IMG/VR virus record: IMGVR_UViG_3300032236_002285
Location: 248,001-312,000 of that record
Length of the DNA: 64,000 nucleotides
Reading direction: 5' to 3' (one strand)
The notes under the pieces are model-generated. The model ran no database searches and had not been told where the DNA came from. It worked only from the letters and a program-made list of their open reading frames with translations. The stretch's first letter is position 1. Every line of letters begins with the position of its first letter. Below, piece by piece: positions 6,904 to 25,911 of this stretch. A program made the position numbers and the translations under genes.

Positions 6904-6905
6904 AT

Positions 6906-6937: not shown

Positions 6938-7271
6938 ATCTTATTAAAGTAACATAACCTTTTTGAGCCATCATAGTTCCATCACAATCATATGTGATAT
7001 ACCAGTTATAAATTCCTAAATCTTGAACAACTCCATTAAAAGTTCCATCCCATCTTTTATCATTTAATTGAGATTCAAAAACGGTTTGACCCCATTTATT
7101 TTTAATTATAAAATTTAATATTTTATAATGATTACCAATTGGTCCAAAGGAATCGTTTTTACCATCATTATTTGGTGTAAAAGCGGATGGTAATGATAAA
7201 ACACAAGATTGAGATCTACCTAAATTAATAACACCTATTAAAAGCGCTATCATAAGCAATGTTTTTTTCAT
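6936..7271 (-). CDS. stand-alone T9SS type-B C-terminal domain with signal peptide
   Basis: Signal peptide followed directly by LPSAFTPNNDGKNDSF..NKWGQTVF..WDGTFNG..GIYNW..GYVTLIR. Confidence 0.85.
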   Translation of the reverse strand: MKKTLLMIALLIGVINLGRSQSCVLSLPSAFTPNNDGKNDSFGPIGNHYKILNFIIKNKWGQTVFESQLNDKRWDGTFNGVVQDLGIYNWYITYDCDGTMMAQKGYVTLIR

Positions 7272-7364
7272 AAATTATAACGTTATTTTCTTTATATATA
7301 ATACTGATAATCAAATGTTTTTATATTTTTTTAAAACAAATTAGGTTATTTAAAATAAACATCC

Positions 7365-7504
7365 TATCTTTGTATAACAAAACGAAAAAATAAATTACAA
7401 ATTAAAAAAAGATTAAAAAAGATTAAAAAAATTAGGTAGAATTAAAACTTTTTCTTAATTTTGTATAAAATAAGTCAAAAGGGACAAAAACTTTTTAATA
7501 TATA
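7365..7504 (+). promoter_or_regulatory. promoter block of tRNA operon 1: two Bacteroidota sigma70-type -7 boxes and a late motif
   Basis: TATCTTTG 7365-7372, TAATTTTG 7456-7463, TAATATATA 7496-7504; 7441-7504 closely matches 23022-23086. Confidence 0.7.
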
Positions 7505-7509
7505 CAACA

Positions 7510-7617
7510 ATGACAACAATGAATTTAAATATGAATATGAATCTAACGGTGGTGCTTAATACATTATGTATTAGACGCTCTGAGGGCTTCGTCATATCTA
7601 AACGATTTGTTGACTAA
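7510..7617 (+). CDS. attenuator leader peptide 1, MTTMNLNMNMNLTVVLNTLCIRRSEGFVISKRFVD
   Basis: ATG 5 nt after the late motif; TAA at 7615-7617; overlaps the antiterminator strand 7579-7591. Confidence 0.7.
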   Translation: MTTMNLNMNMNLTVVLNTLCIRRSEGFVISKRFVD

Positions 7618-7649
7618 ATGTATAACAAATTTTATAAAGGATAAAATCG

Positions 7650-7682
7650 AAACCCTCAGACAAAAAATCTGAGGGTTTTTTT
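7650..7682 (+). terminator. attenuator terminator upstream of tRNA array 1
   Basis: AAACCCTCAGA-caaaaaa-TCTGAGGGTTT plus T-run; 5' arm can instead pair with 7579-7591 (12 of 13 bp). Confidence 0.85.
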
Positions 7683-7697
7683 ATATGTAATAAATTT

Positions 7698-7769
7698 GGG
7701 GTGGTAGCTTAATGGTGAAGCAATCGGCTGTTAACCGATAGATTATAGGTTCGAATCCTATCCACCCCG
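7698..7769 (+). tRNA. tRNA-Asn(GTT)
   Basis: GGGGTGG/CCACCCC acceptor; ATCGG-CTGTTAA-CCGAT; TTCGAAT T-loop. Confidence 0.9.
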
Positions 7770-7780
7770 CAAAAATAAAC

Positions 7781-7865
7781 TGGTAGGTACCCGAGCGGTC
7801 TTCAGGGACTAGTCTGATATACTAGGTGAGAAATCACGACGTGGGTTCAAATCCCACCCTACCAA
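7781..7865 (+). tRNA. tRNA-Ile(GAT) with long variable arm
   Basis: TGGTAGG/CCTACCA; CTAGT-CTGATAT-ACTAG; variable hairpin GTGA-GAAA-TCAC. Confidence 0.8.
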
Positions 7866-7871
7866 CAACAT

Positions 7872-7943
7872 TCACTGGTAGCTCAGAGGCAGAGCAACCG
7901 CCTGTTAAGCGGTAGGTCGGGATATCGTAATTCACCCAGTGAG
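7872..7943 (+). tRNA. tRNA-Asn(GTT), irregular T-arm
   Basis: TCACTGG/CCAGTGA, G73; CCGC-CTGTTAA-GCGG; T-stem poorly paired. Confidence 0.75.
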
Positions 7944-7949
7944 CAAAAC

Positions 7950-8028
7950 GCCTCAGTAGCCGAGGTCGCCTTCTAAGCGACTAATCGTAACGGAACTGAA
8001 AATGTAGGTTCGAATCCTACCTGGGGTA
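7950..8028 (+). tRNA. atypical tRNA-Arg(TCT): D-arm nearly absent, long variable region
   Basis: GCCTCAG/CTGGGGT; GTCGC-CTTCTAA-GCGAC; GTAGG-TTCGAAT-CCTAC. Confidence 0.65.
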
Positions 8029-8083
8029 CAAAAAAAAGGGACACTAGTCTTATTAATATATAAGTAAAATGTAGGTTTGTATT

Positions 8084-8914
8084 ATGTTAGACTTTGAAAA
8101 TATTCAAAAAGACTTTGAAAGTGGTCTTTTTTATCAAAAAGATATACTAATTAAGTATAGTATATCAATTAAAAAATTAAGAACTTTTGTAAAAAAAGGT
8201 TTATTGAATAAAGAAAATTGGAAATTAAAAAAATATGAAGTAAAAAGAGAAACAAAAAAGTTAATATCAGAAGGTAGAAAAAAATGGTTGAAAGAAAATA
8301 CATCTAAACATCCTTGGAGAAATGGAAATAAATCTAAGCCTTGTGAGGAGTTTAAGAAATTCTTAAAAAGTAGGAATATTTTCTTTTTGGAAGAGGTTAT
8401 GATTTCAAAAGAAAGATTCTATTCGGTTGATATTTTAATACCTGAGTTCACTTCGGTTGTAGAAATTAATGGTAATCAACATTATAAATCTAATGGAGAA
8501 CTTAAAGATTACTATAGTGAAAGAAATAGTTTTATAAAAAATAAAGGATGGTCGATATATGAAGTACACTACTCAATTGTTTATAATTTAGAAATGTGTG
8601 ATTCTATTTTAGAAAATATTAAAAATAATAATAAAATCGATATACCATTTTATATAAAAAATAAGAAAGAAAAAAAATATAAGAATAGGGAAGAGTACTG
8701 GAATAAAAGAAAAATTAATAAATTGAATAGTTATAGTGAAAGATTAAATGAATTAAAAAACAGTAGTATAGATTTTAAAAAGATTGGATGGGTTAAACTA
8801 GCATCTGAGATATTAAAAGTTAAAAATGTAAATAAACTATTAAAAGAAATCGATCCAGAATTTTATAAAAATTGTTATAAAAGAAAACAAAATGCCGAGG
8901 TGGTGGAATGGTAG
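8084..8914 (+). CDS. DUF559/Vsr-like PD-(D/E)XK homing endonuclease inserted in tRNA array
   Basis: FYSVDILIP..VVEINGNQHY..RNSFI..GWSIYEVHY; Lys-rich; last 21 nt overlap tRNA-Leu. Confidence 0.7.
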   Translation: MLDFENIQKDFESGLFYQKDILIKYSISIKKLRTFVKKGLLNKENWKLKKYEVKRETKKLISEGRKKWLKENTSKHPWRNGNKSKPCEEFKKFLKSRNIFFLEEVMISKERFYSVDILIPEFTSVVEINGNQHYKSNGELKDYYSERNSFIKNKGWSIYEVHYSIVYNLEMCDSILENIKNNNKIDIPFYIKNKKEKKYKNREEYWNKRKINKLNSYSERLNELKNSSIDFKKIGWVKLASEILKVKNVNKLLKEIDPEFYKNCYKRKQNAEVVEW

Positions 8915-8976
8915 ACACGCTAGCCTTAGAAGCTAGTACCCGCAAGGGTGTGTGGGTTCGAGTCCCACCCTCGGTA
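8894..8976 (+). tRNA. tRNA-Leu(TAG)
   Basis: GCCGAGG/CCTCGGT; CTAGC-CTTAGAA-GCTAG; type II variable arm. Confidence 0.9.
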
Positions 8977-9001
8977 CTGAAGTGAAACGAAAGTTCACTA
9001 C
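8977..9001 (+). repeat. 25-nt tRNA-Leu 3' trailer, copy 1
   Basis: CTGAAGTGAAACGAAAGTTCACTAC, identical to 9810-9834; GAAA-capped hairpin. Confidence 0.9.
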
Positions 9002-9010
9002 AAAAAAAAT

Positions 9011-9096
9011 TGATAGGTTGCCGTAGTGGCCGAACGGTCCGGACTGTTAATCCGGTGACGAATAGTCCATCGTGGGTTCGAATCCCACCCTGTCAG
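9011..9096 (+). tRNA. tRNA-Asn(GTT) with long variable region
   Basis: TGATAGG/CCTGTCA, G73; CCGGA-CTGTTAA-TCCGG. Confidence 0.8.
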
Positions 9097-9103
9097 CAAA
9101 TAT

Positions 9104-9175
9104 AGTCCTGTAGCTTAATGGGAAAGCGCTTGCCTTACATGCAAGAGAGAGTCGGATCGTTACCGACCAGGACTA
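9104..9175 (+). tRNA. tRNA-Val(TAC)
   Basis: AGTCCTG/CAGGACT; CTTGC-CTTACAT-GCAAG; T-loop ATCGTTA. Confidence 0.85.
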
Positions 9176-9181
9176 CAAAAT

Positions 9182-9255
9182 TGGACTGTAGCTCATTTGG
9201 TTAGAGCGCCACGCTGATACCGTGGAGGTGGTCGGATCGTAACCGACCAGTCCAA
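9182..9255 (+). tRNA. tRNA-Ile(GAT)
   Basis: TGGACTG/CAGTCCA; CCACG-CTGATAC-CGTGG; T-loop ATCGTAA. Confidence 0.85.
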
Positions 9256-9261
9256 CAACAA

Positions 9262-9345
9262 GGTACTATGGCCGAGTGGAGTCTTTAAGACGGGAGGCAG
9301 TGGTCTGCAAAACTTCTCACACTGGTTCGAATCCAGTTAGTACCT
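9262..9345 (+). tRNA. tRNA-Cys(GCA) with expanded D-loop
   Basis: GGTACTA/TAGTACC, U73; loop CTGCAAA; extra GTCT-TTA-AGAC hairpin in the D-loop. Confidence 0.75.
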
Positions 9346-9350
9346 CAAAC

Positions 9351-9422
9351 GCTTCTTAAGCATTAATGGTGATGCACTAGTCTTGTAAACTAGAGAAATC
9401 GGATCGTTACCGGTAAGAAGCT
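9351..9422 (+). tRNA. tRNA-Thr(TGT)
   Basis: GCTTCTT/AAGAAGC; CTAGT-CTTGTAA-ACTAG. Confidence 0.85.
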
Positions 9423-9428
9423 CTAAAT

Positions 9429-9500
9429 TGTTCTGTAGCTCAATGGTAGAGCGCTTCTGTGACATGGAAGAGGTAGTCGGATCGTTACCGACCAGGACAA
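9429..9500 (+). tRNA. tRNA-Val(GAC)
   Basis: TGTTCTG/CAGGACA; CTTCT-GTGACAT-GGAAG. Confidence 0.8.
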
Positions 9501-9525
9501 CAAAATAATGGATGGTGATTAAGAG

Positions 9526-9598
9526 TGTTACTTCGTGAAATGGTATACACATTTGTCTTAAAAACAAACTTTTGAGGGTTCAAGTCCCTCAGTAAAAT
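9526..9598 (+). tRNA. degenerate tRNA-Leu(TAA)-like element lacking the variable arm
   Basis: Leu-type D-arm GTGAAATGGTATACAC; TTTGT-CTTAAAA-ACAAA; GAGGG-TTCAAGT-CCCTC; acceptor stem has a mismatch. Confidence 0.55.
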
Positions 9599-9625
9599 CA
9601 CTCTTTGAACTTTCCTCCATTATAT

Positions 9626-9709
9626 GCCGATGTGGCTCAGTGGCGACAGCACTGGTTTTGTAAACCAGAGACGAATAGTCCAACGGGGGTTCGAGTCCCT
9701 CCATCGGCT
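9626..9709 (+). tRNA. tRNA-Thr(TGT) with long variable region
   Basis: GCCGATG/CATCGGC; CTGGT-TTTGTAA-ACCAG. Confidence 0.85.
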
Positions 9710-9724
9710 CAAAATAAATCACCT

Positions 9725-9809
9725 GCCTGGGTGGTGGAACGGTAGACACGCTGGACTTAAAATCCAGTGGGCAGTAATGCCCGTGAGGGTTCGAGTCCCT
9801 CTCCAGGTA
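9725..9809 (+). tRNA. tRNA-Leu(TAA)
   Basis: GCCTGGG/TCCAGGT; CTGGA-CTTAAAA-TCCAG; type II arm. Confidence 0.9.
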
Positions 9810-9834
9810 CTGAAGTGAAACGAAAGTTCACTAC
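9810..9834 (+). repeat. 25-nt tRNA-Leu 3' trailer, copy 2
   Basis: Identical to 8977-9001. Confidence 0.9.
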
Positions 9835-9840
9835 TAAATT

Positions 9841-9911
9841 ATTGGGATAGTTTAATGGTAAATCGTGGGCCTGATATGCCCGTGTTCTTGGTTCGATTCC
9901 AGGTCTCAATA
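9841..9911 (+). tRNA. tRNA-Ile(GAT)
   Basis: ATTGGGA/TCTCAAT; TGGGC-CTGATAT-GCCCG. Confidence 0.8.
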
Positions 9912-9916
9912 CAAAC

Positions 9917-9988
9917 TTCGATATGGCCTATTGGTAGGGTGCAGGGGGACATGTTCCTGAGGACTTGGTTCGATTCCAGGTATCGATA
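9917..9988 (+). tRNA. tRNA-like element, anticodon undetermined (8-nt loop GGACATGT)
   Basis: Acceptor, D- and T-arms present (CTTGG-TTCGATT-CCAGG); non-canonical anticodon loop. Confidence 0.5.
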
Positions 9989-9995
9989 CAAACAT

Positions 9996-10082
9996 CGCGG
10001 GGTAGAGTAGAGGTCAAACTCACTGGGCTCATAACCCAGGGTTGCGCAAGTGACACGTCAGGTTCGAATCCTGCCCCCGCTA
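9996..10082 (+). tRNA. initiator-type tRNA-Met(CAT) with long variable arm
   Basis: Unpaired C1:U72; three consecutive G-C pairs in CTGGG-CTCATAA-CCCAG; extra GTTGC-GCAA-GTGAC hairpin. Confidence 0.8.
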
Positions 10083-10088
10083 CAACAA

Positions 10089-10161
10089 GCAGTCATCGTA
10101 TAGTAGGTGATTACACCACCTTGGTACGGTGGAGATTCCGGTTCGAATCCGGGTGATTGCT
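10089..10161 (+). tRNA. tRNA-Thr(GGT)
   Basis: GCAGTCA/TGATTGC; CCACC-TTGGTAC-GGTGG. Confidence 0.85.
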
Positions 10162-10166
10162 CAAAT

Positions 10167-10247
10167 GCCCAGATGGTGGAATGGTATACACGCCAGTCTA
10201 AGAAGCTGGTTCCTTCGGGATTGAGAGTTCGAGTCTCTCTCTGGGCA
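10167..10247 (+). tRNA. tRNA-Leu(AAG)
   Basis: GCCCAGA/TCTGGGC; CCAGT-CTAAGAA-GCTGG; Leu-type D-arm and variable arm. Confidence 0.85.
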
Positions 10248-10255
10248 CAACATAC

Positions 10256-10340
10256 GCCGGTGTGATCCGATGTGGTAATGGAGTTCGGCTCATATCCGAA
10301 TTGGTTTATCCTATTGCTGGTTCGACTCCAGCCACCGGTA
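10256..10340 (+). tRNA. tRNA-CAT (elongator Met or lysidine Ile2), long variable region
   Basis: GCCGGTG/CACCGGT; TTCGG-CTCATAT-CCGAA. Confidence 0.75.
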
Positions 10341-10345
10341 CAAAT

Positions 10346-10426
10346 GTCAGAATGGTGGAATGGTATACACGCTAGTTTCAAAAACTAGTGCCGAAAGGTA
10401 TGAGAGTTCAAATCTCTCTTCTGATA
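10346..10426 (+). tRNA. tRNA-Leu(CAA)
   Basis: GTCAGAA/TTCTGAT; CTAGT-TTCAAAA-ACTAG. Confidence 0.88.
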
Positions 10427-10448
10427 CTCGATAAAATAAAAAATAAAA

Positions 10449-10730
10449 ATGGAAAAGATTATCGACATCGTTAGAGATAACGTTGCAAGATTCGACTGGG
10501 CTTCTGAAGGAGTCCTCTACTACAAAGTAGAAACTGAAAAATATATCTATCACTTCCCAGTAGATATGAATAACAAAGAAGATGTGGGAACAGCTAATTT
10601 TGAATCAGAACATAAGGCTATAAATCTTATGAGATATTTAAGAAAAGCATCAGAAAACTTAGAAAAAATTAAAAACGATTCAGGTACGCCTGATTGGAAA
10701 AAGACATTAAGAGTTACACAAAAAGTATGA
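10449..10730 (+). CDS. hypothetical phage protein
   Basis: 93-aa ORF; its TGA overlaps the LeuRS ATG (ATGA). Confidence 0.6.
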   Translation: MEKIIDIVRDNVARFDWASEGVLYYKVETEKYIYHFPVDMNNKEDVGTANFESEHKAINLMRYLRKASENLEKIKNDSGTPDWKKTLRVTQKV

Positions 10731-11992
10731 AAGATGAAAAGTATATATGCGTTATGTTTCCTTACCCAAGTGGTTCGGGATTGCATGTAGGTCACTTTTA
10801 TAATTATGCTATAATTGATTCTTATTGTAGATACTTTAAATACAAAGGTCAACAAGTTTTTCAACCTTTTGGTTATGATGCCTTTGGTTTGCCGGCTGAA
10901 AACTATGCTAGAAAAGTAGGTCGTGATGCTAAAGATGTTACCTATGAAAACATCAGTCAATTTAGAAAACAGATGGAAAAGATGGATACCAACTATCAAG
11001 AAATGTTGGTAACATCTGATCCTTCTTATCAAAAATGGACACAATGGTTGTTTTTGAAATTGAAAGAACATGGCTTGGCTTATAAAAAAGATGGTGAAGT
11101 AAATTGGTGTCCTTCTTGTGAAACCGTATTGGCTCGTGAACAAGTTAAATCTGATTGTTGTGAAAGATGTTCAACTAAGGTAGAAATGAAAACAATGAAT
11201 CAGTGGTACTTTAAGATTACTGATTATAAAGAACGTTTGATTAAAAACTTGGATTGGATAGATTATCCAAAATCAACTATTAACGCGCAAAGAATGTGGT
11301 TGGAAAACTTGCACGATTGGTGTGTTTCTCGTCAAAGAAAATGGGGCTGTCCAATTCCAATAGAAGGTGAAACCGATACAATGGATACATTTGTAGATTC
11401 TTCATTTTACTATGTTAGATATTGTGATGCTACTAATGATAATGAATTGTGTGCTAAAGATAAATATAAACAAGTAGATGTTTATGTTGGTGGTAATGAA
11501 CACGCTTGTATGCACTTGATTTATGCTCGTTTTATTAATATGTTTTTGTATGATATTGGTGTTGTTTCAGAGGAAGAACCATTTAAGAAAGTTATACATC
11601 AAGGTATAATTTTGAACGAAGGTGAAAAAATGTCTAAAACAAAAGGTAATGTTATTAATCCAGATGATTATGACTCTGATGAATTGAGATTTTATATGAT
11701 GTTTATTGGTCATTATTTTGATGGTGGTTCTTGGTCTGACCAAAATATAGCTGGTATTAAAAGATTTATTAGTCGTTTTAAGGAGTGGATGTCAAGAGAA
11801 GGTTCTGATACTTTTGATATTGAATCATTTAAGAAAAAAATATTTAACTACACTGAGAGTTTTAAGTTTAATAAAGTTGTTAGTGAGTTTATGACAATAG
11901 TTAATCAAAATAGAACTAAAAACATAACACCTGAGATAAAAAAAGAATTGATTGAATTGATTAAGGTGTATATGCCTGGAATTAAAATTTAA
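10727..11992 (+). CDS. leuS: minimal leucyl-tRNA synthetase lacking the CP1 editing domain
   Basis: MFPYPSGSGLHVGH (HIGH), FGYDAFGLPAENYA, DWCVSRQRKWG, ETDTMDTFVDSSFYY, EKMSKTKGN; about 421 aa; start moved to ATG 10727. Confidence 0.9.
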   Translation: MKDEKYICVMFPYPSGSGLHVGHFYNYAIIDSYCRYFKYKGQQVFQPFGYDAFGLPAENYARKVGRDAKDVTYENISQFRKQMEKMDTNYQEMLVTSDPSYQKWTQWLFLKLKEHGLAYKKDGEVNWCPSCETVLAREQVKSDCCERCSTKVEMKTMNQWYFKITDYKERLIKNLDWIDYPKSTINAQRMWLENLHDWCVSRQRKWGCPIPIEGETDTMDTFVDSSFYYVRYCDATNDNELCAKDKYKQVDVYVGGNEHACMHLIYARFINMFLYDIGVVSEEEPFKKVIHQGIILNEGEKMSKTKGNVINPDDYDSDELRFYMMFIGHYFDGGSWSDQNIAGIKRFISRFKEWMSREGSDTFDIESFKKKIFNYTESFKFNKVVSEFMTIVNQNRTKNITPEIKKELIELIKVYMPGIKI

Positions 11993-11995
11993 ATT

Positions 11996-12024
11996 AAAAA
12001 AGTCCTCTATTTTAGAGGACTTTT
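11996..12024. terminator. bidirectional intrinsic terminator
   Basis: AAAAGTCCTCT-atttt-AGAGGACTTTT. Confidence 0.75.
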
Positions 12025-12077
12025 AATTTATTTAAGATTTTAAATATACACAATAAATGTTTATCACTATCATATCT

Positions 12078-12347
12078 TTATTTATCAGCTATAGTTAGTT
12101 TTAATCTTATTGTTGTATTTTCATCTGTGATATTACCAGTAGTTACTCTAACACCTTTTACCCAAACTTCTGACTCATTTACTTTAAAAGCATTAGTAAG
12201 ATTTAATCTACTAATTGATTGAGTTAAAAAATCGGCTACTGATAAGTCAGTATCTAACTTCATATCAAATGAAGGTGATGGGTAAGAACTTTTATTGCTC
12301 TTTGAATCTACATAAGTAATATCTGATTTAACGTGAAATAGTTTCAT
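12078..12347 (-). CDS. hypothetical protein
   Basis: 89-aa ORF co-oriented with the upstream 743-aa gene. Confidence 0.55.
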   Translation of the reverse strand: MKLFHVKSDITYVDSKSNKSSYPSPSFDMKLDTDLSVADFLTQSISRLNLTNAFKVNESEVWVKGVRVTTGNITDENTTIRLKLTIADK

Positions 12348-12368
12348 ATTTATTTTTATTATTTTTTA

Positions 12369-14600: not shown

Positions 14601-14696
14601 AGTGATTAAAATTTTTTATTTTATAGATTATATATTAAAATACCAAATAAACATTTTACAATCTCAGTTTTTTTCCATAAATTTGTAATCTAATTA

Positions 14697-14834
14697 ATGA
14701 GTATTTGTACAAAACTACAAACAATAACAGGTATACATAGATATCTTTTCAGACTACTATTTGTGATATGGTTCATCAATAGCGCATGGGCTTTATTTTG
14801 GTATATAGTGATTGGATTAATTATAGAAGATTAA
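14697..14834 (+). CDS. small predicted membrane protein (45 aa), not in the ORF track
   Basis: MSICTKLQTITGIHRYLFRLLFVIWFINSAWALFWYIVIGLIIED; TAAATTTG box at 14678-14685. Confidence 0.5.
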   Translation: MSICTKLQTITGIHRYLFRLLFVIWFINSAWALFWYIVIGLIIED

Positions 14835-14866
14835 TAAATTTATATTAAAAAATAATATATATGGAC

Positions 14867-16486: not shown

Positions 16487-16517
16487 AAAAAGCCTCTGAT
16501 TTTTCAGAGGCTTTTTT
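16485..16517. terminator. bidirectional intrinsic terminator
   Basis: AAAAAAGCCTCTGA-tttt-TCAGAGGCTTTTTT. Confidence 0.8.
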
Positions 16518-16518
16518 A

Positions 16519-18798: not shown

Positions 18799-18853
18799 GA
18801 CTTATATATTAAAAAAGCAATTCCGGATATTAATTAAAATAATTCTATATAAA

Positions 18854-18885
18854 TTTGGATATTGTGGATAAGTAATGTATATTTG
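18854..18885 (+). promoter_or_regulatory. Bacteroidota sigma70-type promoter
   Basis: TTTG (18854) - 20 nt - TATATTTG (18878-18885). Confidence 0.75.
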
Positions 18886-18910
18886 TATTTAGAAAAATCA
18901 TAACCCTAAA

Positions 18911-20146: not shown

Positions 20147-20185
20147 TAAAGAGCCAGAAAACTGGCTCTTTTTAAATATTATATT

Positions 20186-20635
20186 ATGAAAACAATAGCA
20201 ATCTACGCTGGAAGTTTTAACCCATTTCACATCGGACATCTTAATATAGTTGAGAAAGCCGAAAAAATATTTGGTAGTGGTAATGTTGTTATCGCTATAG
20301 GAGTTAACCCAGAAAAGCCAAAATCTGATATTGAAATCAGATGTCAAGAAATCAGTAAAAAGATTAATCGTCAAGTTATTTACTATACTAAATTTCTTCA
20401 TGAACTAATTGAAGATTATGAAAAATCTGGTTATAGTGTTGTACTTATAAGAGGTTTAAGAAATGGTGACGACTTAGCTTATGAAGATAACCAACTTAAA
20501 TTTATCAATGATTTCAAAAAAGATATCAATGTTGTTTTCTTTCGCTGTGATGAAGAATTTAAACACATTAGTTCTTCTGCTATTAGAAATCTACAATCTT
20601 TCCGACCAGGTTCCGGTGATAAATATTTAGTATAA
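20186..20635 (+). CDS. coaD: pantetheine-phosphate adenylyltransferase
   Basis: AIYAGSFNPFHIGH, LIRGLRNGDDLAYE, ISSSAIR. Confidence 0.8.
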   Translation: MKTIAIYAGSFNPFHIGHLNIVEKAEKIFGSGNVVIAIGVNPEKPKSDIEIRCQEISKKINRQVIYYTKFLHELIEDYEKSGYSVVLIRGLRNGDDLAYEDNQLKFINDFKKDINVVFFRCDEEFKHISSSAIRNLQSFRPGSGDKYLV

Positions 20636-20883
20636 TGAGGGATATTGAGGGTAGATATTTATCTGATAATGAAATTGAAGCAATTAATTCTTATTTATTA
20701 CAAAATGGTTGCTCAACTATTAATGGCACACCAAATATAACAAATATACACTTTACTAATGGTTTTTATAAAACCGAATTTTCAGAGGCTAACAAAGCAA
20801 CATTAAGTTACCTTGAAGTACCTGAAAACTGGGTTAAGTCATTTATAAGAGATAAGAAAATAAATAAAATAATAAATGGATAA
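20635..20883 (+). CDS. hypothetical protein with C-terminal RDKKINKI motif
   Basis: Translationally coupled to neighbours; shared C-terminal motif. Confidence 0.55.
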   Translation: MRDIEGRYLSDNEIEAINSYLLQNGCSTINGTPNITNIHFTNGFYKTEFSEANKATLSYLEVPENWVKSFIRDKKINKIING

Positions 20884-21286
20884 GCAAAGATACTTCAATG
20901 TAATAAAAAACTATAAGAAAATGTGTTCAAACCTTATAGCAAGTATTTCATCATATAATTGGTCTGACGAATTTTGTAGAAAAGAAGTTAAAGAACTTTA
21001 TGCAAAACTAATTAAAGAATTTGAAAATGTTGACTTCACTCAATTCACACTTGAAGAACTAAAGCAACTTGATTTTAATATGTTGGATGATGATACAATC
21101 TTAATGCCAGTTTGGGCAATTGATTGTTTACCAGATGGTGCTATTGTAATGAGTATTAATGGTGATGAAATCACTTTTGATAAATCTAAAGGTTTAGATA
21201 AAGATGTAAGATTTGGATGTACCGCCTATGGATTTTCTAAATCTCAATTAAGAGATTCTGCTATTGAGCAAGTTTTAGGTAAGTAG
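20876..21286 (+). CDS. hypothetical protein with C-terminal RDSAIEQVL motif
   Basis: Operon position; shared C-terminal motif. Confidence 0.6.
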   Translation: MDKQRYFNVIKNYKKMCSNLIASISSYNWSDEFCRKEVKELYAKLIKEFENVDFTQFTLEELKQLDFNMLDDDTILMPVWAIDCLPDGAIVMSINGDEITFDKSKGLDKDVRFGCTAYGFSKSQLRDSAIEQVLGK

Positions 21287-21287
21287 T

Positions 21288-21692
21288 ATGAAAGAAGTAG
21301 AATTGCTAAAATTAGGGTACATAGTACATGCCGTTAGACAAGATAAAAAAAATCTTATAATGGTTGCTTTCAATGGTGGTCCATTATTTGACTATTATAT
21401 TTCAATTTTAACTAGTCAATGTGATGATTACGAATATCTAAAAACTGATAAGTCTATTATTGGTGGTATAAATTTAAACTTGATGAATCGAAAAGATTTA
21501 GAAACATTCAAGTGTGTACCAGATGATAATCCAATTGTAGGTAAAAACTTTACAGTAAATAATCATTATTGGAGTACATCAGAAGTTAAAAAGATAATAA
21601 ATAATAATATTATAATAACTAAAAACTCAGTCTATGCCATTCATGATATTTCTGAGTTAAGAGATAAAAAAATAAATGATTTAGGTATATGA
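21288..21692 (+). CDS. hypothetical protein with C-terminal RDKKINDLGI motif
   Basis: Operon position; shared C-terminal motif. Confidence 0.6.
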   Translation: MKEVELLKLGYIVHAVRQDKKNLIMVAFNGGPLFDYYISILTSQCDDYEYLKTDKSIIGGINLNLMNRKDLETFKCVPDDNPIVGKNFTVNNHYWSTSEVKKIINNNIIITKNSVYAIHDISELRDKKINDLGI

Positions 21693-22243
21693 TTAATTAT
21701 ATTCCAACAAATAGAAACAATCCAAGATTAGCAAATGTAGGTAGTGCTTGGGGTAATATTCCTACAATAATAAAAGACATAATTGATAGGTTTAATTTAA
21801 AACAAGATTTAGCTCTTGAATTTGGCGTTGAGTATGGTTATTCAACTTCAGCGTTAGCTAACTATTTTAATAATGTAATTGGTGTTGATACTTTTGAAGG
21901 AGATCCACACTCTGGATTTAAAATAAATCATCTTGAAACAACTACTGAAAATCTTAAAGATTTTAGTAATATTCAATTAGTTAAATCAGATTACAGAGAT
22001 TATATTAAAGATAATAATAATATGTATGATATGATTCATATTGATATTATACACACTTACAATGAAACATTTGAATGCGGTGAGTGGGCAATAAATCACT
22101 CAAAGTGTGTTGTTTTTCATGATACACTTTCATTTTATGAAATAATGAGAGTTTGTGAAGATCTATCAGCAAAACACAACCTTGATTTTTACAATTATGA
22201 GGAATCTTATGGTTTAGGTATTTTAATTAATAATAATCTATAA
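21689..22243 (+). CDS. class I SAM-dependent methyltransferase (Methyltransf_24-like)
   Basis: ALEFGVEYGYST, IGVDTF, YDMIHIDIIHTY, VVFHD. Confidence 0.8.
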   Translation: MINYIPTNRNNPRLANVGSAWGNIPTIIKDIIDRFNLKQDLALEFGVEYGYSTSALANYFNNVIGVDTFEGDPHSGFKINHLETTTENLKDFSNIQLVKSDYRDYIKDNNNMYDMIHIDIIHTYNETFECGEWAINHSKCVVFHDTLSFYEIMRVCEDLSAKHNLDFYNYEESYGLGILINNNL

Positions 22244-22310
22244 ACTAAATAAAGAATAAAAGTATAACAAATGGCAATAATGCCATAATTAAAAATAAAC
22301 AAGAATAAAA

Positions 22311-22502
22311 ATGAAAACAGGAACAGTAAAGTTCTACAATGAGGCTAAAGGATTTGGTTTCATCACAGACGAAAACGGAACTGACGTGTTTGTACACGCT
22401 ACAGGACTAAAAGATGAAATCAGAGAAAATGATTCAGTTAGCTTTGAAGTAACAGAAGGTAAAAAAGGATTAAATGCAATTAATGTAACAGTTAATGCTT
22501 AA
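22311..22502 (+). CDS. cspA: cold-shock protein
   Basis: GTVKFYNEAKGFGFI..DVFVH (RNP1/RNP2). Confidence 0.95.
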   Translation: MKTGTVKFYNEAKGFGFITDENGTDVFVHATGLKDEIRENDSVSFEVTEGKKGLNAINVTVNA

Positions 22503-22521
22503 TATATTTTTAGTACTAATT

Positions 22522-22551
22522 AAAACCCTTAGATTTATCTGAGGGTTTTTT
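22522..22551 (+). terminator. intrinsic terminator
   Basis: AAAACCCTTAGA-ttta-TCTGAGGGTTTTTT. Confidence 0.8.
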
Positions 22552-22576
22552 GTTTATAAAAATTAATATATAATGT

Positions 22577-22951
22577 ATGAAATATTTACAAACAATAAAC
22601 GAATATCAAAGAACTGTAGGTTTTAGATATTCTGAACCAAAAGAAAAATATAAAGTATCTTTATTATGTAAAGGTCAAGATATCAATGAAGATAAGATAA
22701 ATGAAGGTTTATCAAAAGTTAGTGAATTGACTTATGACTCAAAGTCTATTGAAGTAAATTTACTTGATGAAGGTATGATTGCTGAACTACCAGAAATTGG
22801 ATCTGTAGAGATTAGCGCAATTGTTAGTTTTAATGTAACTCTTTACAATGAGAAAGAAGTAAATGGTGTTGTTAGTGAATTAGGTCAAAAGTTATCAAAA
22901 TTTGATATTGAAATATTAGATTTTAAATCAAAAGAAAATTTGGAAGATTAA
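22577..22951 (+). CDS. hypothetical protein, MKYLQTINEY tag family
   Basis: Late motif at 22564-22572; N-terminal tag. Confidence 0.6.
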   Translation: MKYLQTINEYQRTVGFRYSEPKEKYKVSLLCKGQDINEDKINEGLSKVSELTYDSKSIEVNLLDEGMIAELPEIGSVEISAIVSFNVTLYNEKEVNGVVSELGQKLSKFDIEILDFKSKENLED

Positions 22952-23086
22952 AATATTATTTCTATCTTTGTATTCACAAAACAAAAAAGAATTAAAAAAA
23001 AATTAAAAAAATATTTGACAAATTAAAACTTTGTTGTATATTTGTATAAAATAAGAACAAAAGGAACAAAAACTTTTTAATATATA
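22939..23086 (+). promoter_or_regulatory. promoter block of tRNA operon 2: two sigma70-type promoters and a late motif
   Basis: TTTG22939/TATCTTTG22963; TTTG23014/TATATTTG23037; TAATATATA 23078-23086; homologous to 7441-7504. Confidence 0.75.
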
Positions 23087-23091
23087 CAGAA

Positions 23092-23190
23092 ATGAAAAAC
23101 TTAAACTTAAATATCGTTAACCCTCAACCGCAAGTTGTAATCGATCAGGATCCTGGTTCGAAAGGGGCTAACTATGTGGTTTTAAGTTAA
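23092..23190 (+). CDS. attenuator leader peptide 2, MKNLNLNIVNPQPQVVIDQDPGSKGANYVVLS
   Basis: ATG 5 nt after the late motif; TAA at 23188-23190; Pro/Gln/Asp-rich core. Confidence 0.6.
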   Translation: MKNLNLNIVNPQPQVVIDQDPGSKGANYVVLS

Positions 23191-23213
23191 AGATATTATA
23201 ACTATGAAACATT

Positions 23214-23246
23214 ACCCAGTTAGTCGAAAGATTAACTGGGTTTTTT
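23214..23246 (+). terminator. attenuator terminator upstream of the Asp/Pro tRNA block
   Basis: ACCCAGTTAGTC-gaaa-GATTAACTGGGT plus T-run; 23166-23173 GGCTAACT can pair with 23218-23225. Confidence 0.85.
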
Positions 23247-23257
23247 GTTTTAGATAC

Positions 23258-23329
23258 AGTCCGTGGGTATGTTGGTATGAATAACCTCCTGTCACGGGGA
23301 AGAAGCCGGTTCGATTCCGGTACGGACTG
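23258..23329 (+). tRNA. tRNA-Asp(GTC)
   Basis: AGTCCGT/ACGGACT, G73; loop CTGTCAC. Confidence 0.85.
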
Positions 23330-23334
23330 CAAAA

Positions 23335-23408
23335 CGAGAAGTGACTAAGGTTTTAAGCACGCGCCGTCTGGAGCGGTGAGTTAGCAGGTTCGATTCCTGT
23401 CTTCTCGA
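23335..23408 (+). tRNA. tRNA-Pro(TGG)-like with atypical anticodon loop
   Basis: C1:G72 and A73 (CGAGAAG/CTTCTCG-A); CGCCG-TCTGGAG-CGGTG has C33 and A37. Confidence 0.6.
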
Positions 23409-23471
23409 CAACAAGTAGCTTTTGAGGCGAAAAATACTCTTTAGAGAATAGAGTAAAACAATTCTCAAAAT

Positions 23472-23544
23472 GGTCTCGTGGTTGAATGGTTACAATACCA
23501 CCCTGTCACGGTGCGAGATGCCGGTTCGATTCCGGTCGAGACCG
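23472..23544 (+). tRNA. tRNA-Asp(GTC)
   Basis: GGTCTCG/CGAGACC, G73; loop CTGTCAC. Confidence 0.9.
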
Positions 23545-23549
23545 CAAAA

Positions 23550-23620
23550 GGACATATAGCTTAAAAGGAAAGAGTACCTCCAGTGGGAGGGGAGTCTTGG
23601 TTCAAGTCCAGGTATGTCCG
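23550..23620 (+). tRNA. tRNA-like element, anticodon undetermined (shortened loop)
   Basis: GGACATA/TATGTCC, G73; D- and T-arms intact; CCTCC-AGTG-GGAGG. Confidence 0.5.
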
Positions 23621-23626
23621 CAAAAA

Positions 23627-23698
23627 GGTCTATTAGGGTAGTGGTTATCCTTCCCGACTGTCTATCGGGAGACACCGGTTCGAATCCGGTATAGACCG
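23627..23698 (+). tRNA. tRNA-Asp(GTC)
   Basis: GGTCTAT/ATAGACC; CCCGA-CTGTCTA-TCGGG. Confidence 0.88.
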
Positions 23699-23745
23699 CA
23701 AATGGGCTTTTCAAGACAAAAAGTTTGTAGATTACTTAATGAAAC

Positions 23746-23820
23746 GGTCTAGTGGTGAAGTGGCTATCATATCTGCCTGTCACGCAGAAGTAGAGGGATC
23801 GAAACCCTTCTAGACCGCCA
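23746..23820 (+). tRNA. tRNA-Asp(GTC), CCA encoded
   Basis: GGTCTAG/CTAGACC-GCCA; TCTGC-CTGTCAC-GCAGA. Confidence 0.9.
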
Positions 23821-23826
23821 AAAATT

Positions 23827-23901
23827 CGGGGTGTAGCGTAGTCCGGTTATCGCGCATGCTTTGGGAGCATGAAATCGTAGGTTCGAATCCTGCCACCCCG
23901 A
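23827..23901 (+). tRNA. tRNA-Pro(TGG)
   Basis: CGGGGTG/CACCCCG-A; CATGC-TTTGGGA-GCATG. Confidence 0.92.
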
Positions 23902-23932
23902 CAAAGAAACAAAATATTAATAAATAGAAATT

Positions 23933-23986
23933 ATGAGAACAACAACACAATACCAGCAACAACAACAAATTAATCCAACGGATTGA
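23933..23986 (+). CDS. attenuator leader peptide 3, MRTTTQYQQQQQINPTD
   Basis: Six Gln codons (CAA x5, CAG x1) in 17; TGA lies inside segment 2 of a 1:2/2:3/3:4 hairpin set. Confidence 0.85.
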   Translation: MRTTTQYQQQQQINPTD

Positions 23987-24014
23987 TAACGGTATCGTAT
24001 TGTCTAAACTTTAC

Positions 24015-24048
24015 AAACCCTATTCAATCTGATTGAGTAGGGTTTTTT
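24015..24048 (+). terminator. attenuator terminator upstream of tRNA-Gln x3 and glnS
   Basis: AAACCCTATTCAA-tctga-TTGAGTAGGGTTT plus T-run, ending 2 nt before tRNA-Gln. Confidence 0.88.
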
Positions 24049-24050
24049 AT

Positions 24051-24121
24051 TGTCTGATGGTGTAGTGGTAGCACAAGGGTCTTTGATCCCCTTAGTTCAG
24101 GTCCGATTCCTGATCAGACAA
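24051..24121 (+). tRNA. tRNA-Gln(TTG)
   Basis: TGTCTGA/TCAGACA; loop CTTTGAT; T-loop TCCGATT. Confidence 0.8.
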
Positions 24122-24128
24122 CAAATAT

Positions 24129-24210
24129 TGAGGAATAGAATAATGGCAGTTCACCCGCCTTTGAAGCGGAGAGAGAAATCTCAGTGTAGGTTCGAGTCCT
24201 ACTTCCTCAA
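24129..24210 (+). tRNA. tRNA-Gln(TTG) with long variable arm
   Basis: TGAGGAA/TTCCTCA; CCGC-CTTTGAA-GCGG; GAGA-GAAA-TCTC arm. Confidence 0.82.
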
Positions 24211-24216
24211 CAAAAT

Positions 24217-24288
24217 TGCTTTATAGTATATGGGTTAACATATCTGTCTTTGAAACAGATGAACTTGGTTCGAGTCCAAGTGGAGCAA
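24217..24288 (+). tRNA. tRNA-Gln(TTG)
   Basis: TGCTTTA/TGGAGCA; TCTGT-CTTTGAA-ACAGA. Confidence 0.85.
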
Positions 24289-24306
24289 CAAAAAATAATA
24301 ACTACT

Positions 24307-25911
24307 ATGAATTTCATTGAAGAAAAAATAATTGAAAAAGGTAATCTTGATAAACTAACATTGAGATTTCCACCAGAACCAAATGGCTATTTACATATTG
24401 GTCACGCTAAATCCATTATCTTAAATTTTGGTTTAGCTGAAAAATATAATAGACCTTGTAACTTGAGATTTGATGATACTAACCCAACTACCGAAGATAC
24501 TCACTTTGTTGAGTCAATTATAAAAGATATAGAATGGTTAGGTTACAAACCCGCCAATATTTTCTATACATCTGATTATTTTGATTTTCTTTATGAATGT
24601 GCTATTACTTTAATTAAAAAAGGATTAGCTTATGTTGATGATTCAACATCAGAAGAAATTGCTAACTTAAAAGGAACACCAACTTCACCTGGTAAAGATT
24701 CACCTTATAAGTCAAGAAGTGTTGATGAAAATTTAGACCTATTTAATAGAATGAGATTAGGTGAATTTGTAGAAGGTTCTAAAATTCTTAGAGCTAATAT
24801 TGATATGACTTCTCCTAATATGATTTTAAGAGATCCAGTTCTTTATAGAATAATATCTAAGTCACACCACAGAACTGGTGATACTTGGAAGATTTATCCA
24901 ATGTATGACTTTGCTCATCCACTTTCAGATTATAAAGAAGGTATTACCGATTCTTTATGTACTTTAGAATTTGAAGTTCACAGACCTTTATATATGTGGG
25001 TTTTAGAAAATTGTGATTTAGAAAATCCGCTTCCAGAAGAAACTGAGTTTGCTCGTTTGAACATTGACTATACGGTTATGTCAAAGAGAAAATTAAAAAG
25101 ATTAGTTGAAGAAGGATTTGTAGATGGTTGGGATGATCCAAGAATGCCAACTATTTCTGGTTTAAGAAGAAGAGGTTTTACTCCAAATGCTATTAAAGAT
25201 TTTTGTGATAGAATTTCTGTTACAAGAAAAGATGGTATTGTTTCTTATTTACTTTTAGAAGAATGTTTAAGAACTGATTTGAACATAGTTACCAATAGAT
25301 TAATGGGTGTTATGGATCCAGTTAAGTTAGTTATTACTAATTGGGATAGCGGAACTGAAATGGTTGAAGTTGAAAATAATCCTGGTGATGAAAGTGCTGG
25401 TACAAGAATGATTCCTTTTAGTGGTGAACTATTTATTGAAAGAGAAGATTTCAGAGAAGAAGCTAATAATAAATTTCATAGATTGAAATTAGGTGGTGAA
25501 GTAAGATTAAAAGGCGCTTATGTTATTATGGCTAACGAAGTTATCAAAGATGAATTTGGAGAAATCACTGAGATTAGATGTACTTACGATCCTTTAACAA
25601 GATCAGGTATGTCTATTGAAAGAAAGATTAAAGGAACTATTCACTGGGTATCTGCTGAACACGGAGTTAGAATGAATGTAAATGAATATGATAGATTATT
25701 TAATGATGGATCACCAGATAAAAATGAAGATGATTTTATCAATTATATCAACCCAGATTCACTTATAATTAATGATAAGGCAATCTTTGAACCTCACGTT
25801 TTAAACGTCAAGGAACCAGTTCAAATGATGAGAAAAGGGTATTATATTTTAGATACTGATGGTAAAAGTTTCAATAAAACGGTAAGTTTAAAAGAAGGTT
25901 GGGTAGGTTAA
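24307..25911 (+). CDS. glnS: glutaminyl-tRNA synthetase
   Basis: RFPPEPNGYLHIGHAKS, RFDDTNP, IYPMYDFAH, SLCTLEF, VMSKRKL, GWDDPRMPTISGLRRRG; start moved to ATG 24307 (ORF-track start lies inside a tRNA). Confidence 0.95.
   Translation: MNFIEEKIIEKGNLDKLTLRFPPEPNGYLHIGHAKSIILNFGLAEKYNRPCNLRFDDTNPTTEDTHFVESIIKDIEWLGYKPANIFYTSDYFDFLYECAITLIKKGLAYVDDSTSEEIANLKGTPTSPGKDSPYKSRSVDENLDLFNRMRLGEFVEGSKILRANIDMTSPNMILRDPVLYRIISKSHHRTGDTWKIYPMYDFAHPLSDYKEGITDSLCTLEFEVHRPLYMWVLENCDLENPLPEETEFARLNIDYTVMSKRKLKRLVEEGFVDGWDDPRMPTISGLRRRGFTPNAIKDFCDRISVTRKDGIVSYLLLEECLRTDLNIVTNRLMGVMDPVKLVITNWDSGTEMVEVENNPGDESAGTRMIPFSGELFIEREDFREEANNKFHRLKLGGEVRLKGAYVIMANEVIKDEFGEITEIRCTYDPLTRSGMSIERKIKGTIHWVSAEHGVRMNVNEYDRLFNDGSPDKNEDDFINYINPDSLIINDKAIFEPHVLNVKEPVQMMRKGYYILDTDGKSFNKTVSLKEGWVG

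Follow-up and report, generated by a model that had tools for sequence, protein, structure and literature searches.

Predicted codon-matched leader-peptide attenuators in front of tRNA and aminoacyl-tRNA synthetase operons in a huge phage of Bacteroidota

Leaders, terminators and tRNA blocks at the locus

The analyzed window (a stretch of 64,000 nt, positions 248,001 to 312,000 of the virus record) belongs to the IMG/VR contig 3300032236_002285 (476 kb), whose relatives include the 634 kb and 642 kb phage genomes LR745206 and LR756502. tRNA genes were predicted with ARAGORN, which found 27 tRNAs, all on the + strand, at 7698-10427 and 23258-24289, while an Rfam search added three more at 7872-7943, 7950-8028 and 23335-23408. 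tRNA identities rest on anticodons only, and several of these tRNAs have unusual shapes. Three short ATG-ORFs, hereafter L1, L2 and L3, are each followed by a G+C-rich hairpin and a T-run, and the T-runs end 15, 11 and 2 nt, respectively, before the first tRNA. This confirms the initial annotation, which had placed a leader ORF, an alternative helix and an intrinsic terminator ending 2-15 nt before the first tRNA in front of each of three tRNA blocks, with two corrections: there are four physical tRNA blocks, of which one (8894-10427) has no leader of its own and lies in the L1 operon, and gltX (14861-16486), which lies inside the range annotated as the candidate system, has no attenuator.

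Unit L1 (+ strand, as are all features below unless stated otherwise) opens with a Bacteroidota-type -7 promoter box (TAATTTTG) at 7456-7463, located in a stretch of about 150 nt (promoter and 5' UTR) that is paralogous to the one before L2, and the motif AAAACTTTTTAATATATA is shared between the two at 7487 and 23069. The leader ORF at 7510-7617 encodes 35 aa (MTTMNLNMNMNLTVVLNTLCIRRSEGFVISKRFVD, beginning MTTMNLNMNMNLTVVLNTLCIRRSEGF) with a sensing block made of Thr/Met/Asn/Leu/Val/Cys/Ile/Arg codons. Region 1 (TCTAACGGTG, 7542-7551) lies inside the sensing codons and pairs with region 2 in the terminated conformation according to minimum free energy (MFE) folds. Region 2 (TCTGAGGG, 7579-7586, extended by TTCG at 7588-7591) is the 5' strand of the antiterminator, lies inside the leader ORF and is a copy of the terminator's 3' arm. 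The intrinsic terminator (7653-7682) consists of a 5' arm at 7653-7660 (region 3), a 3' arm at 7668-7675 (region 4) and a T-run at 7676-7682. The first tRNA block (7698-8028) contains Asn(GUU), Ile(GAU, with a long variable arm), Asn(GUU) and Arg(UCU), where the anticodons of the two tRNAs found only by Rfam were read from the sequence. It is followed by an ORF of 276 aa of unknown function (8084-8914) that overlaps the start of the next tRNA, for which no Pfam or NCBIfam hit and only a weak PHROG hit was obtained. The second block (8894-10427) holds Leu(UAG, UAA x2, AAG, CAA), Asn, Val(UAC, GAC), Ile(GAU x2), Thr(UGU x2, GGU), Met(CAU x2), a probable Cys(GCA) at 9262-9346 and one odd tRNA at 9917-9989. 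The operon ends with a gene (10727-11992) whose start overlaps the stop of ORF 10449-10730 (ATGA) and which is followed by a bidirectional terminator (11998-12024). The initial annotation called this gene leuS, but it is a truncated LeuRS-like gene of about 421-432 aa, scoring 399 bits against TIGR00396, below the 548-bit cut-off.

Unit L2 has its own -7 promoter box (TATATTTG) at 23037-23044 and a leader ORF at 23092-23190 (32 aa, MKNLNLNIVNPQPQVVIDQDPGSKGANYVVLS, beginning MKNLNLNIVNPQPQVVIDQDPGS) with a sensing block of Pro/Gln/Asp codons. Its region 2 (GGCTAACTATG, 23166-23176) pairs either with region 1 (23131-23138) or with the 5' arm of the intrinsic terminator (23215-23246; 5' arm 23215-23225, 3' arm 23230-23240, then the T-run). 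The tRNA block of L2 (23258-23902) comprises Asp(GUC) x4, Pro(UGG) x2 (one at 23335-23408) and one odd tRNA at 23550-23621. The leader ORF L3 (23933-23986, 17 aa, MRTTTQYQQQQQINPTD) has no promoter of its own, so it is a second attenuator in tandem within the L2 transcript. Its region 2 (CGGATTGATAACGG, 23979-23992) overlaps the stop codon and pairs either with region 1 (ATTAATCC, about 23968-23976) or with the 5' arm and loop of the terminator (24018-24048; 5' arm 24018-24028, 3' arm 24032-24042, then the T-run). Three tRNA-Gln(UUG) genes (24051-24289) and glnS (glutamine--tRNA ligase, 24307-25911, start MNFIEEKI), the last gene of the L2/L3 operon, follow. The glnS assignment is confirmed by a score of 668 bits against TIGR00440, above the 426-bit cut-off.

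All three units show the classical 1:2, 2:3 and 3:4 alternative pairings, and the three regions fold much better than shuffled sequence (z = -5.25, -5.35 and -4.75 for L1, L2 and L3). In L1, 20 of the first 21 sense codons are decodable by its own array (background 0.37, P = 3e-8), and the 21st, TGT, is matched by the probable tRNA-Cys, while in L3 the same is true for 6 of 7 block codons (P = 4e-9). The match of L2 is weak when taken alone, as it is not significant against its own Asp/Pro array under strict wobble rules (P = 0.1 to 0.57), and becomes clear only when the Gln codons of the tandem downstream unit are counted or when its homologues are compared.

Related units in other phage genomes

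About 45 such units were found in related phages, with leaders rich in the codons read by their own downstream tRNAs, although units in different genomes are homologous and these counts are thus not independent events. L1 is kept as an ORF in five relatives (LR745206, LR756502 and three IMG/VR or metagenome loci) despite about 77% nucleotide identity, and the Gln and Asp/Pro leaders occur in loci whose GlnRS is down to about 56-60% identical. L2 homologues with (N)PQPQ..DQDP(D) blocks stand before Asp/Pro arrays in at least 10 loci, and 16 distinct Gln-run homologues of L3 were recovered, always in the Gln reading frame. Further leader classes match their own arrays: HKNFSKSHKWF (also HKFKHKWF) before His, Phe, Trp and Lys tRNAs, SKSSSRSSS before Arg and Ser, SYESYYEEG before Glu and Tyr, ISIAVIGNGAGAI before Ile(UAU), Gly and Ala, and LRQLVLEQLIE before Leu, Arg, Glu and Ile. 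Leaders also sit directly before synthetase genes, i.e., IIII before ileS, VVVV before a valS-like gene, LLL, LLLL and LLLLLL before leuS-like genes (three loci, relatives of the truncated LeuRS-like gene of the window), NNRNR before asnS plus an argS-like gene, QQLQQQ before glnS, and DD before aspS. In the 99 kb of LR745206 examined, 55 of 59 tRNAs lie behind such a unit.

The leaders of all units are ATG-ORFs of 13-38 aa whose upstream context is A/T-rich and G-poor, like that of the phage's long ORFs, with an AATATA motif present in 25 of 46 leaders and a TAnnTTTG box about 8-55 nt upstream of most stand-alone leaders in this clade. The hairpins have energies of -9 to -18 kcal/mol and are followed by a T-run, with the stem ending 9-25 nt before the first tRNA in most units and further in some. 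In order to test whether leader content tracks array content, leaders and arrays were permuted in LR745206 and in LR756502 (7 units each), and the true pairing was the best of 5040 in both genomes, at amino-acid as well as codon level, although the shared N-terminal motif (Asn/Ile/Thr/Leu codons) makes every leader partly match the large L1-type array. Antiterminator specificity was assessed over 42 distinct terminators: the duplex energy was -12.2 kcal/mol with a leader's own terminator and -7.9 with others (Wilcoxon P = 4.5e-13), 0 of 20000 reassignments reached the observed mean, and the reversed-sequence control was not significant. As a control for the arrangement itself, 0 of 80 and 0 of 73 bacterial or bacteria-like glnS loci carried a Gln-run ORF plus terminator.

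These results disfavor the possibility that the hairpins are ordinary terminators, insulators or RNA-processing signals of upstream transcripts, with untranslated chance ORFs and tRNAs made by read-through or from unrecognized promoters. AT-rich DNA does yield many short ORFs, the window holds about 24 terminator-like hairpins, and a TAnnTTTG-like string overlaps the start of the first tRNA at 7691-7698. However, besides the permutation and complementarity results, the ORFs are kept in frame across divergent relatives, there is no room for a promoter in the 2-15 nt between T-run and tRNA, and a start from the 7691 box would truncate the tRNA, so that we regard this explanation as very unlikely. 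Equally improbable is that the ORFs encode functional small peptides, for example regulators of the phage synthetases or tRNA-modifying enzymes, instead of cis-acting sensors. The N-terminal motif is indeed conserved across classes and trans-acting leader peptides do exist (peTrpL in Sinorhizobium, PMC7298713), but within a class the peptides vary freely except in composition, the length of the codon run varies, the conserved C-terminal parts coincide with RNA pairing segments, and the match between terminator and antiterminator would be left without a reason.

Inferred mechanism of attenuation

The sequence evidence supports the core claim of the initial annotation and makes it probable that each unit is a ribosome-mediated (leader-peptide) transcription attenuator whose output is a phage tRNA array, often followed by a cognate aminoacyl-tRNA synthetase gene; at the level of sequence, this claim survived the refutation tests named there. 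In the inferred mechanism, a Bacteroidota-type promoter starts a transcript that opens with a short leader ORF, in which a common N-terminal motif (M-K/T-T/N-I/L-x-N-I) precedes a block of codons read by the tRNAs encoded downstream, and just 3' of this block lies region 2, complementary to the 5' arm of the terminator. If the cognate aminoacyl-tRNAs are plentiful, the ribosome would run over region 2 while RNA polymerase makes the terminator, the 3:4 hairpin would form and transcription would stop, whereas if any of them is limiting, the ribosome would stall in the block, region 2 would pair with region 3, and polymerase would read through into the tRNAs and synthetase. As the products are the molecules whose shortage is sensed, each unit would be a negative-feedback controller of tRNA supply, and a leader that mixes codons for several amino acids would act as an OR gate. 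The Gln codons carried by L2 fit its control of access to the Gln unit downstream.

The placement of the codons is consistent with this model. A boundary was derived from folding with a ribosome footprint, without using amino-acid identity, and in 43 units cognate residues made up 59% of the 8 codons before it, against 20% N-terminally and 13% after it, although this is a thermodynamic model only. In many units the folding model forms the antiterminator even without a ribosome, and the default state without translation may therefore be read-through, unlike in the classic trp model, but the three window units do have a 1:2 helix in their MFE fold. This behavior, together with the shared N-terminal motif and similar promoters, which would allow co-regulation, could indicate that the leaders sense general translation capacity, i.e., that any loss of ribosome loading or elongation (host shut-off, ribosome-targeting defenses) turns on all translation-supply operons together and that codon content is secondary. 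We consider this unlikely, as it does not explain why each leader carries the codons of its own array or synthetase, or why those codons sit exactly before the masking boundary.

The phage is uncultivated and the mechanism is inferred from sequence only; translation of the leaders, the response of read-through to decoding speed and the physiological trigger are inferences. Possible triggers are a mismatch between host tRNAs and the AT-rich phage codon usage, decay of host tRNAs, or their cleavage by host defenses. The initial annotation proposed starvation or anticodon nucleases such as PrrC or PARIS, which remains an inference, and extra tRNA cannot cure amino-acid starvation, so what is sensed remains ambiguous. 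Its statement that replacements are transcribed only then implies a tight off-state, which sequence alone cannot establish. A more speculative and rather doubtful reading, not excluded by the data, is that huge phages of Bacteroidota carry a self-tuning controller of decoding supply, a paralogous family of ten or more attenuators per genome, each reading the decoding speed of one set of codons and releasing the matching tRNAs and synthetase, and possibly a tRNA-repair module (RNA ligase) behind an H-T-Y-K leader, which would also detect tRNA depletion or cleavage by host anticodon nucleases and replace exactly the species that are hit.

To our knowledge, and in the literature searched, leader-peptide attenuation has not been described for tRNA genes, and we found no description of it in any virus. 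If it works as inferred, a phage measures codon-by-codon decoding speed on host ribosomes and adjusts its own tRNA and synthetase output, a concrete and testable answer to the long-standing question of why huge phages carry dozens of tRNAs and when they use them, linking phage tRNAs to supply-and-demand control and possibly to defense against tRNA-targeting immunity. The units show how one attenuator scaffold was duplicated and retuned by changing a few codons together with a compensating terminator arm, and they provide a natural set of compact, codon-specific sensors that could serve as reporters of aminoacyl-tRNA availability in Bacteroidota.

Comparison with known regulatory systems

Large tRNA arrays and synthetases in huge phages of Bacteroidota are known cargo, which may serve as aids to codon usage or as counter-measures to host tRNA decay and anticodon nucleases. 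The description of huge-phage tRNA and synthetase repertoires (PMC7162821) covers only their presence, with no occurrence of "attenuat", "leader" or "terminator" in its text, and the regulation is what is new here. T-box riboswitches of Firmicutes have the same regulatory aim, as synthetase genes are switched on when the cognate tRNA is uncharged by choosing between terminator and antiterminator, but a T-box binds the uncharged tRNA directly and has no leader ORF, and no T-box match was found in 6500-26500 at E <= 1.

The attenuators of amino-acid biosynthetic operons in Proteobacteria (trp, his, leu, thr, ilvGMEDA, pheA; see also PMC1183508 and PMC2965389) share with the phage units a short leader ORF with a block of cognate codons, mutually exclusive 1:2, 2:3 and 3:4 helices, an intrinsic terminator before the regulated genes, and leaders that mix several amino acids, as in ilv and thr. 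They differ in that the products regulated here are tRNA genes and synthetases instead of biosynthetic enzymes, the system is encoded by a phage, at least 10 paralogous units per genome together cover codons of 19 amino acids (all but Cys) in LR745206, and initiation lacks a Shine-Dalgarno sequence, as in Bacteroidota. No Rfam leader family (His_leader, Leu_leader, Thr_leader, Trp_leader, Phe_leader) matched at the leaders, the only hits being a sub-threshold Phe_leader match on the bidirectional terminator at 16483-16546 and a trpB-motif match with E = 0.86. The stand-alone ileS, valS-like, leuS-like, asnS, aspS and glnS units resemble the pheST attenuator of E. coli (pheM leader), in which a synthetase operon appears to be gated by a leader peptide rich in the cognate Phe codon, but that is a single case in a bacterium, while here a whole family is present and most units control tRNAs as well.

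Genomic context and anatomy of the leader-terminator units

The stretch 7300-11000 of the window matches two uncultured phage genomes, LR745206 (634,780 bp) and LR756502 (642,428 bp), at about 77% nucleotide identity, and the lengths of these records correspond to two of the four largest genomes (634 and 642 kb) of Al-Shayeb et al. 2020, whose largest genomes all fall in the 'Mahaphage' clade and are predicted to infect Bacteroidetes (PMC7162821). The IMG/VR contig 3300032236_002285 (476 kb), which holds the window, encodes the same GlnRS and LeuRS-like proteins at 100% identity. The promoter-like boxes fit the Bacteroidota TAnnTTTG type and the start codons lack Shine-Dalgarno sequences.

The tRNA genes were predicted with ARAGORN, which found 27 tRNAs, all on the + strand, at 7698-10427 and 23258-24289, while Rfam added three more. 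A conserved tRNA-like gene with anticodon GCA at 9262-9346, a probable tRNA-Cys with an unusual D region, was missed by ARAGORN at default settings and by Rfam; it is conserved in LR745206 and LR756502 with compensatory changes in the anticodon stem, and a related array has a tRNA-Cys that ARAGORN calls outright. Some tRNAs whose anticodons normally go with class-I tRNAs (Ile GAU, Asn, Thr, Met CAU, and Gln; 7781-7866, 9011-9097, 9626-9710, 9997-10081, 10256-10341, and 24129-24211) are 83–87 nt long. The three whose structure was drawn (Ile GAU at 7781-7866, Asn at 9011-9097, and Gln at 24129-24211) carry a stem-looped long variable arm, like class-II tRNAs, whereas this is inferred from length alone for the Thr and the two Met tRNAs. 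Two further tRNA-like genes, at 9917-9989 and 23550-23621, were reported by ARAGORN with non-standard anticodon loops ('acat' and 'gt') and may be decayed copies or unusual decoders.

The initial annotation, which had described short leader ORFs and intrinsic terminators in front of the tRNA blocks, was confirmed. The leader ORF L1 (7510-7617) is followed by a terminator stem at 7653-7675 and a first tRNA at 7698, L2 (23092-23190) by a stem at 23215-23240 and a first tRNA at 23258, and L3 (23933-23986) by a stem at 24018-24042 and a first tRNA at 24051. The T-runs end 15, 11, and 2 nt before the first tRNA, which leaves no room for a promoter. The three regions fold far better than shuffled sequence (z = -5.25, -5.35, and -4.75 for L1, L2, and L3) and their MFE structures are 1:2 plus 3:4. 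When the 3' arm of the terminator was left out of the fold, or a ribosome footprint was placed on the sensing codons, region 2 (the 5' strand of the antiterminator) paired with the 5' arm of the terminator, i.e., TCTGAGGG (7579-7586) with CCCTCAGA (7653-7660), GGCTAACTATG (23166-23176) with CCCAGTTAGTC (23215-23225), and CGGATTGATAACGG (23979-23992) with 24018-24031. L1 and L2 share a paralogous stretch of about 150 nt holding promoter and 5' UTR. L3 has no promoter and follows tRNA-Pro directly, so it is a second attenuator in series, which fits the presence of Gln codons in L2 in addition to Asp and Pro codons.

The operons end in a truncated LeuRS-like gene (10727-11992) and in glnS (24307-25911). 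The gltX gene (14861-16486), whose product (GluRS) has an N-terminal extension of about 53 aa relative to the bacterial model, has no leader-terminator, unlike the other synthetase genes. The phage synthetases are often much shorter than the full-length family profiles, e.g., about 421 aa for the LeuRS-like protein, which aligns only to parts of the 843-position LeuRS profile, 509 aa for a ValRS-like protein (6275-7804 of the related locus L020), 392 aa for an ArgRS-like protein (2720-3898 of locus L046), and 211 aa for a HisRS-like protein (5425-6060 of L045, a locus of LR745206). Pfam, NCBIfam, and PHROG searches of the neighboring ORFs (8084-8914, 12369-14600, and 16519-18798) gave no function. 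The first of these (276 aa, no family) is embedded inside the tRNA array and overlaps the start of tRNA-Leu, and a protein-coding ORF inside an array of LR756502 (38004-38804 of locus L047) resembles a GIY-YIG homing endonuclease. A cold-shock-protein-like gene (22311-22545; MKTGTVKFYNEAKGFGFI...) with its own terminator lies about 0.5 kb upstream of the L2 promoter, with ORF 22577-22951 between them.

Codon matching and comparison with related phages

In L1, 20 of the first 21 sense codons are decodable by the tRNAs of its own operon (background 0.37, P = 2.6e-8), including the isoacceptor-level matches TTA/UAA, CTA/UAG, CTT/AAG, and AGA/UCU, while the remaining codon, the conserved TGT, is covered by the probable tRNA-Cys. 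In L3, 6 of 7 block codons are Gln (P = 4e-9). L2 alone is not significant and becomes so only when the Gln codons are included (P = 0.002).

L1 is conserved as an ORF in LR745206, LR756502, and three IMG/VR or metagenome contigs, where it shows substitutions and in-frame length changes. A search of IMG/VR with a 19-nt leader pattern gave 14 hits, of which only 3 were true homologues and the rest chance matches. Loci were additionally fetched with the GlnRS protein, and those with at least about 56–60% GlnRS identity carry Gln-run leaders (16 distinct versions) before tRNA-Gln arrays and glnS, or before glnS alone in one of these loci (L026), while Asp/Pro leaders precede Asp/Pro arrays. Viral contigs with more distant GlnRS (≤ 54% identity) lack the system, so it is confined to one clade.

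A scan of 99 kb of LR745206 and 98.5 kb of LR756502 revealed seven tRNA units per genome, each with a leader of matching composition. The block HKNFSKSHKWF precedes His, Phe, Trp, and Lys tRNAs, SKSSSRSSS precedes Arg and Ser, SYESYYEEG precedes Glu and Tyr, and ISIAVIGNGAGAI precedes Ile(UAU), Gly, and Ala, while the leader of the L1 type precedes Asn, Arg, Leu, Val, Ile, Thr, and Met, the Asp/Pro type Asp and Pro, and the Gln type Gln. In the LR745206 stretch, 55 of 59 tRNAs lie behind such a unit, and in the window all of them do. In other contigs the arrays are grouped differently and the leader follows: in locus L023, LRQLVLEQLIE precedes Leu/Arg/Met/Glu/Ile, and in L012 (an IMG/VR or metagenome locus) the GGA, GCG, and ATA codons of the leader match the Gly(UCC) and Ala(UGC) tRNAs of the array and a probable tRNA-Ile(UAU), the anticodon of which was read by eye, although ARAGORN calls this tRNA in the homologous LR745206 and LR756502 arrays.

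Leaders also precede stand-alone synthetase genes, with IIII before ileS, VVVV before a valS-like gene, LLL, LLLL, and LLLLLL before leuS-like genes (three loci), NNRNR before asnS plus an argS-like gene, DD before aspS, and QQLQQQ before glnS. Extra scans for ileS and valS relatives in IMG/VR returned nothing new, and the two close asnS relatives showed no detectable leader upstream. In the two complete genomes a leader of the same style (MRALHTYKITIDLG / MKTLHTYKNVIDWM; 5085-5177 of L045 in LR745206 and 25658-25755 of L047 in LR756502), carrying H-T-Y-K, precedes together with a terminator a cluster encoding a HisRS-like fragment and RNA ligase(s), which may be a tRNA-repair module under attenuator control.

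Nearly all leaders, in the window and in the related loci, begin with M-[KTRN]-[TNK]-[ILMV]-x-N-[IL] whatever their class, which suggests one ancestral leader that was duplicated and retuned, or a shared requirement for translation initiation. At 100-4609 the window holds a family of paralogous ORF starts that share a conserved 5' region (..AATATATACTnTAATGAAACAT.., peptides starting MKHLKTYK), and the same AATATATA motif precedes many leader start codons.

Statistical support and controls

In each of the two genomes, LR745206 and LR756502, the true leader-to-array pairing scored best of all 5040 permutations, at both the amino-acid and the codon level (diagonal 0.36–0.42, off-diagonal 0.10–0.12), although the shared N-terminal motif inflates matches to the L1-type array. 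In order to assess the specificity of the antiterminators, the duplex of each leader with the 5' arm plus loop of its own terminator was compared with those formed with other terminators. Over 42 distinct terminators the energies averaged -12.2 and -7.9 kcal/mol, respectively (Wilcoxon P = 4.5e-13), 0 of 20000 random reassignments reached the observed mean, and a reversed-sequence control was not significant. The placement of the cognate codons was examined with a boundary defined purely from folding with a 28-nt ribosome mask, i.e., the last A-site position that still allows the antiterminator. Cognate residues make up 59% of the eight codons before this boundary, 20% of the N-terminal part, and 13% of the part after it (43 units).

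An origin from the host was considered and rejected for the bacterial glnS loci searched. The closest bacterial GlnRS genes are 52–58% identical and mostly from Bacteroidota, and they show no Gln leader, terminator, or tRNA-Gln upstream: a Gln-run ORF plus terminator occurred upstream of glnS in 0 of 80 bacterial genomes, and anywhere on the glnS strand in 0 of 73 bacteria-like metagenome loci.

Inferred mechanism and relation to known attenuators

The best-supported reading, inferred from sequence without expression data, is classical ribosome-mediated attenuation applied to tRNA supply, and at the level that sequence analysis allows we consider this mechanism likely. A stall at cognate codons would keep region 2 free to sequester the 5' arm of the terminator, so that the polymerase reads through, while smooth translation would cover region 2 and transcription would terminate. 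Many units, however, form the antiterminator in the model even without a ribosome. Because the products relieve the stall, each unit would be a negative-feedback loop, in which leaders that mix codons act as OR gates and tandem units (L2 then L3) add a second check. As more tRNA cannot cure amino-acid starvation, the relevant signal is more likely shortage of tRNA than shortage of amino acid, and candidate causes are a mismatch between the host tRNA pool and AT-rich phage codons, host tRNA turnover, or cleavage by defense nucleases. The last of these, proposed in the initial annotation (anticodon nucleases), is plausible but has no direct support, with the H-T-Y-K leader before the HisRS-like and RNA-ligase cluster as one hint.

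Full-text searches found no description of leader-peptide attenuation of tRNA genes, or of such elements in jumbo, huge, or mega phages, and the paper that released the related genomes does not mention attenuators, leaders, or terminators (PMC7162821). An Rfam scan of 6500-26500 at E ≤ 1 returned tRNAs but no leader or T-box family at the three sites, and the device is not a member of any Rfam leader family and it is not a T-box. In its mode of action it appears to resemble the trp, his, leu, thr, ilv, and pheA attenuators and, in its synthetase-only form, the E. coli pheST attenuator, while what is notable here is its output (tRNAs), its carrier (a virus), and its expansion into a family covering codons of 19 of the 20 amino acids (no Cys codon in the LR745206 leaders).
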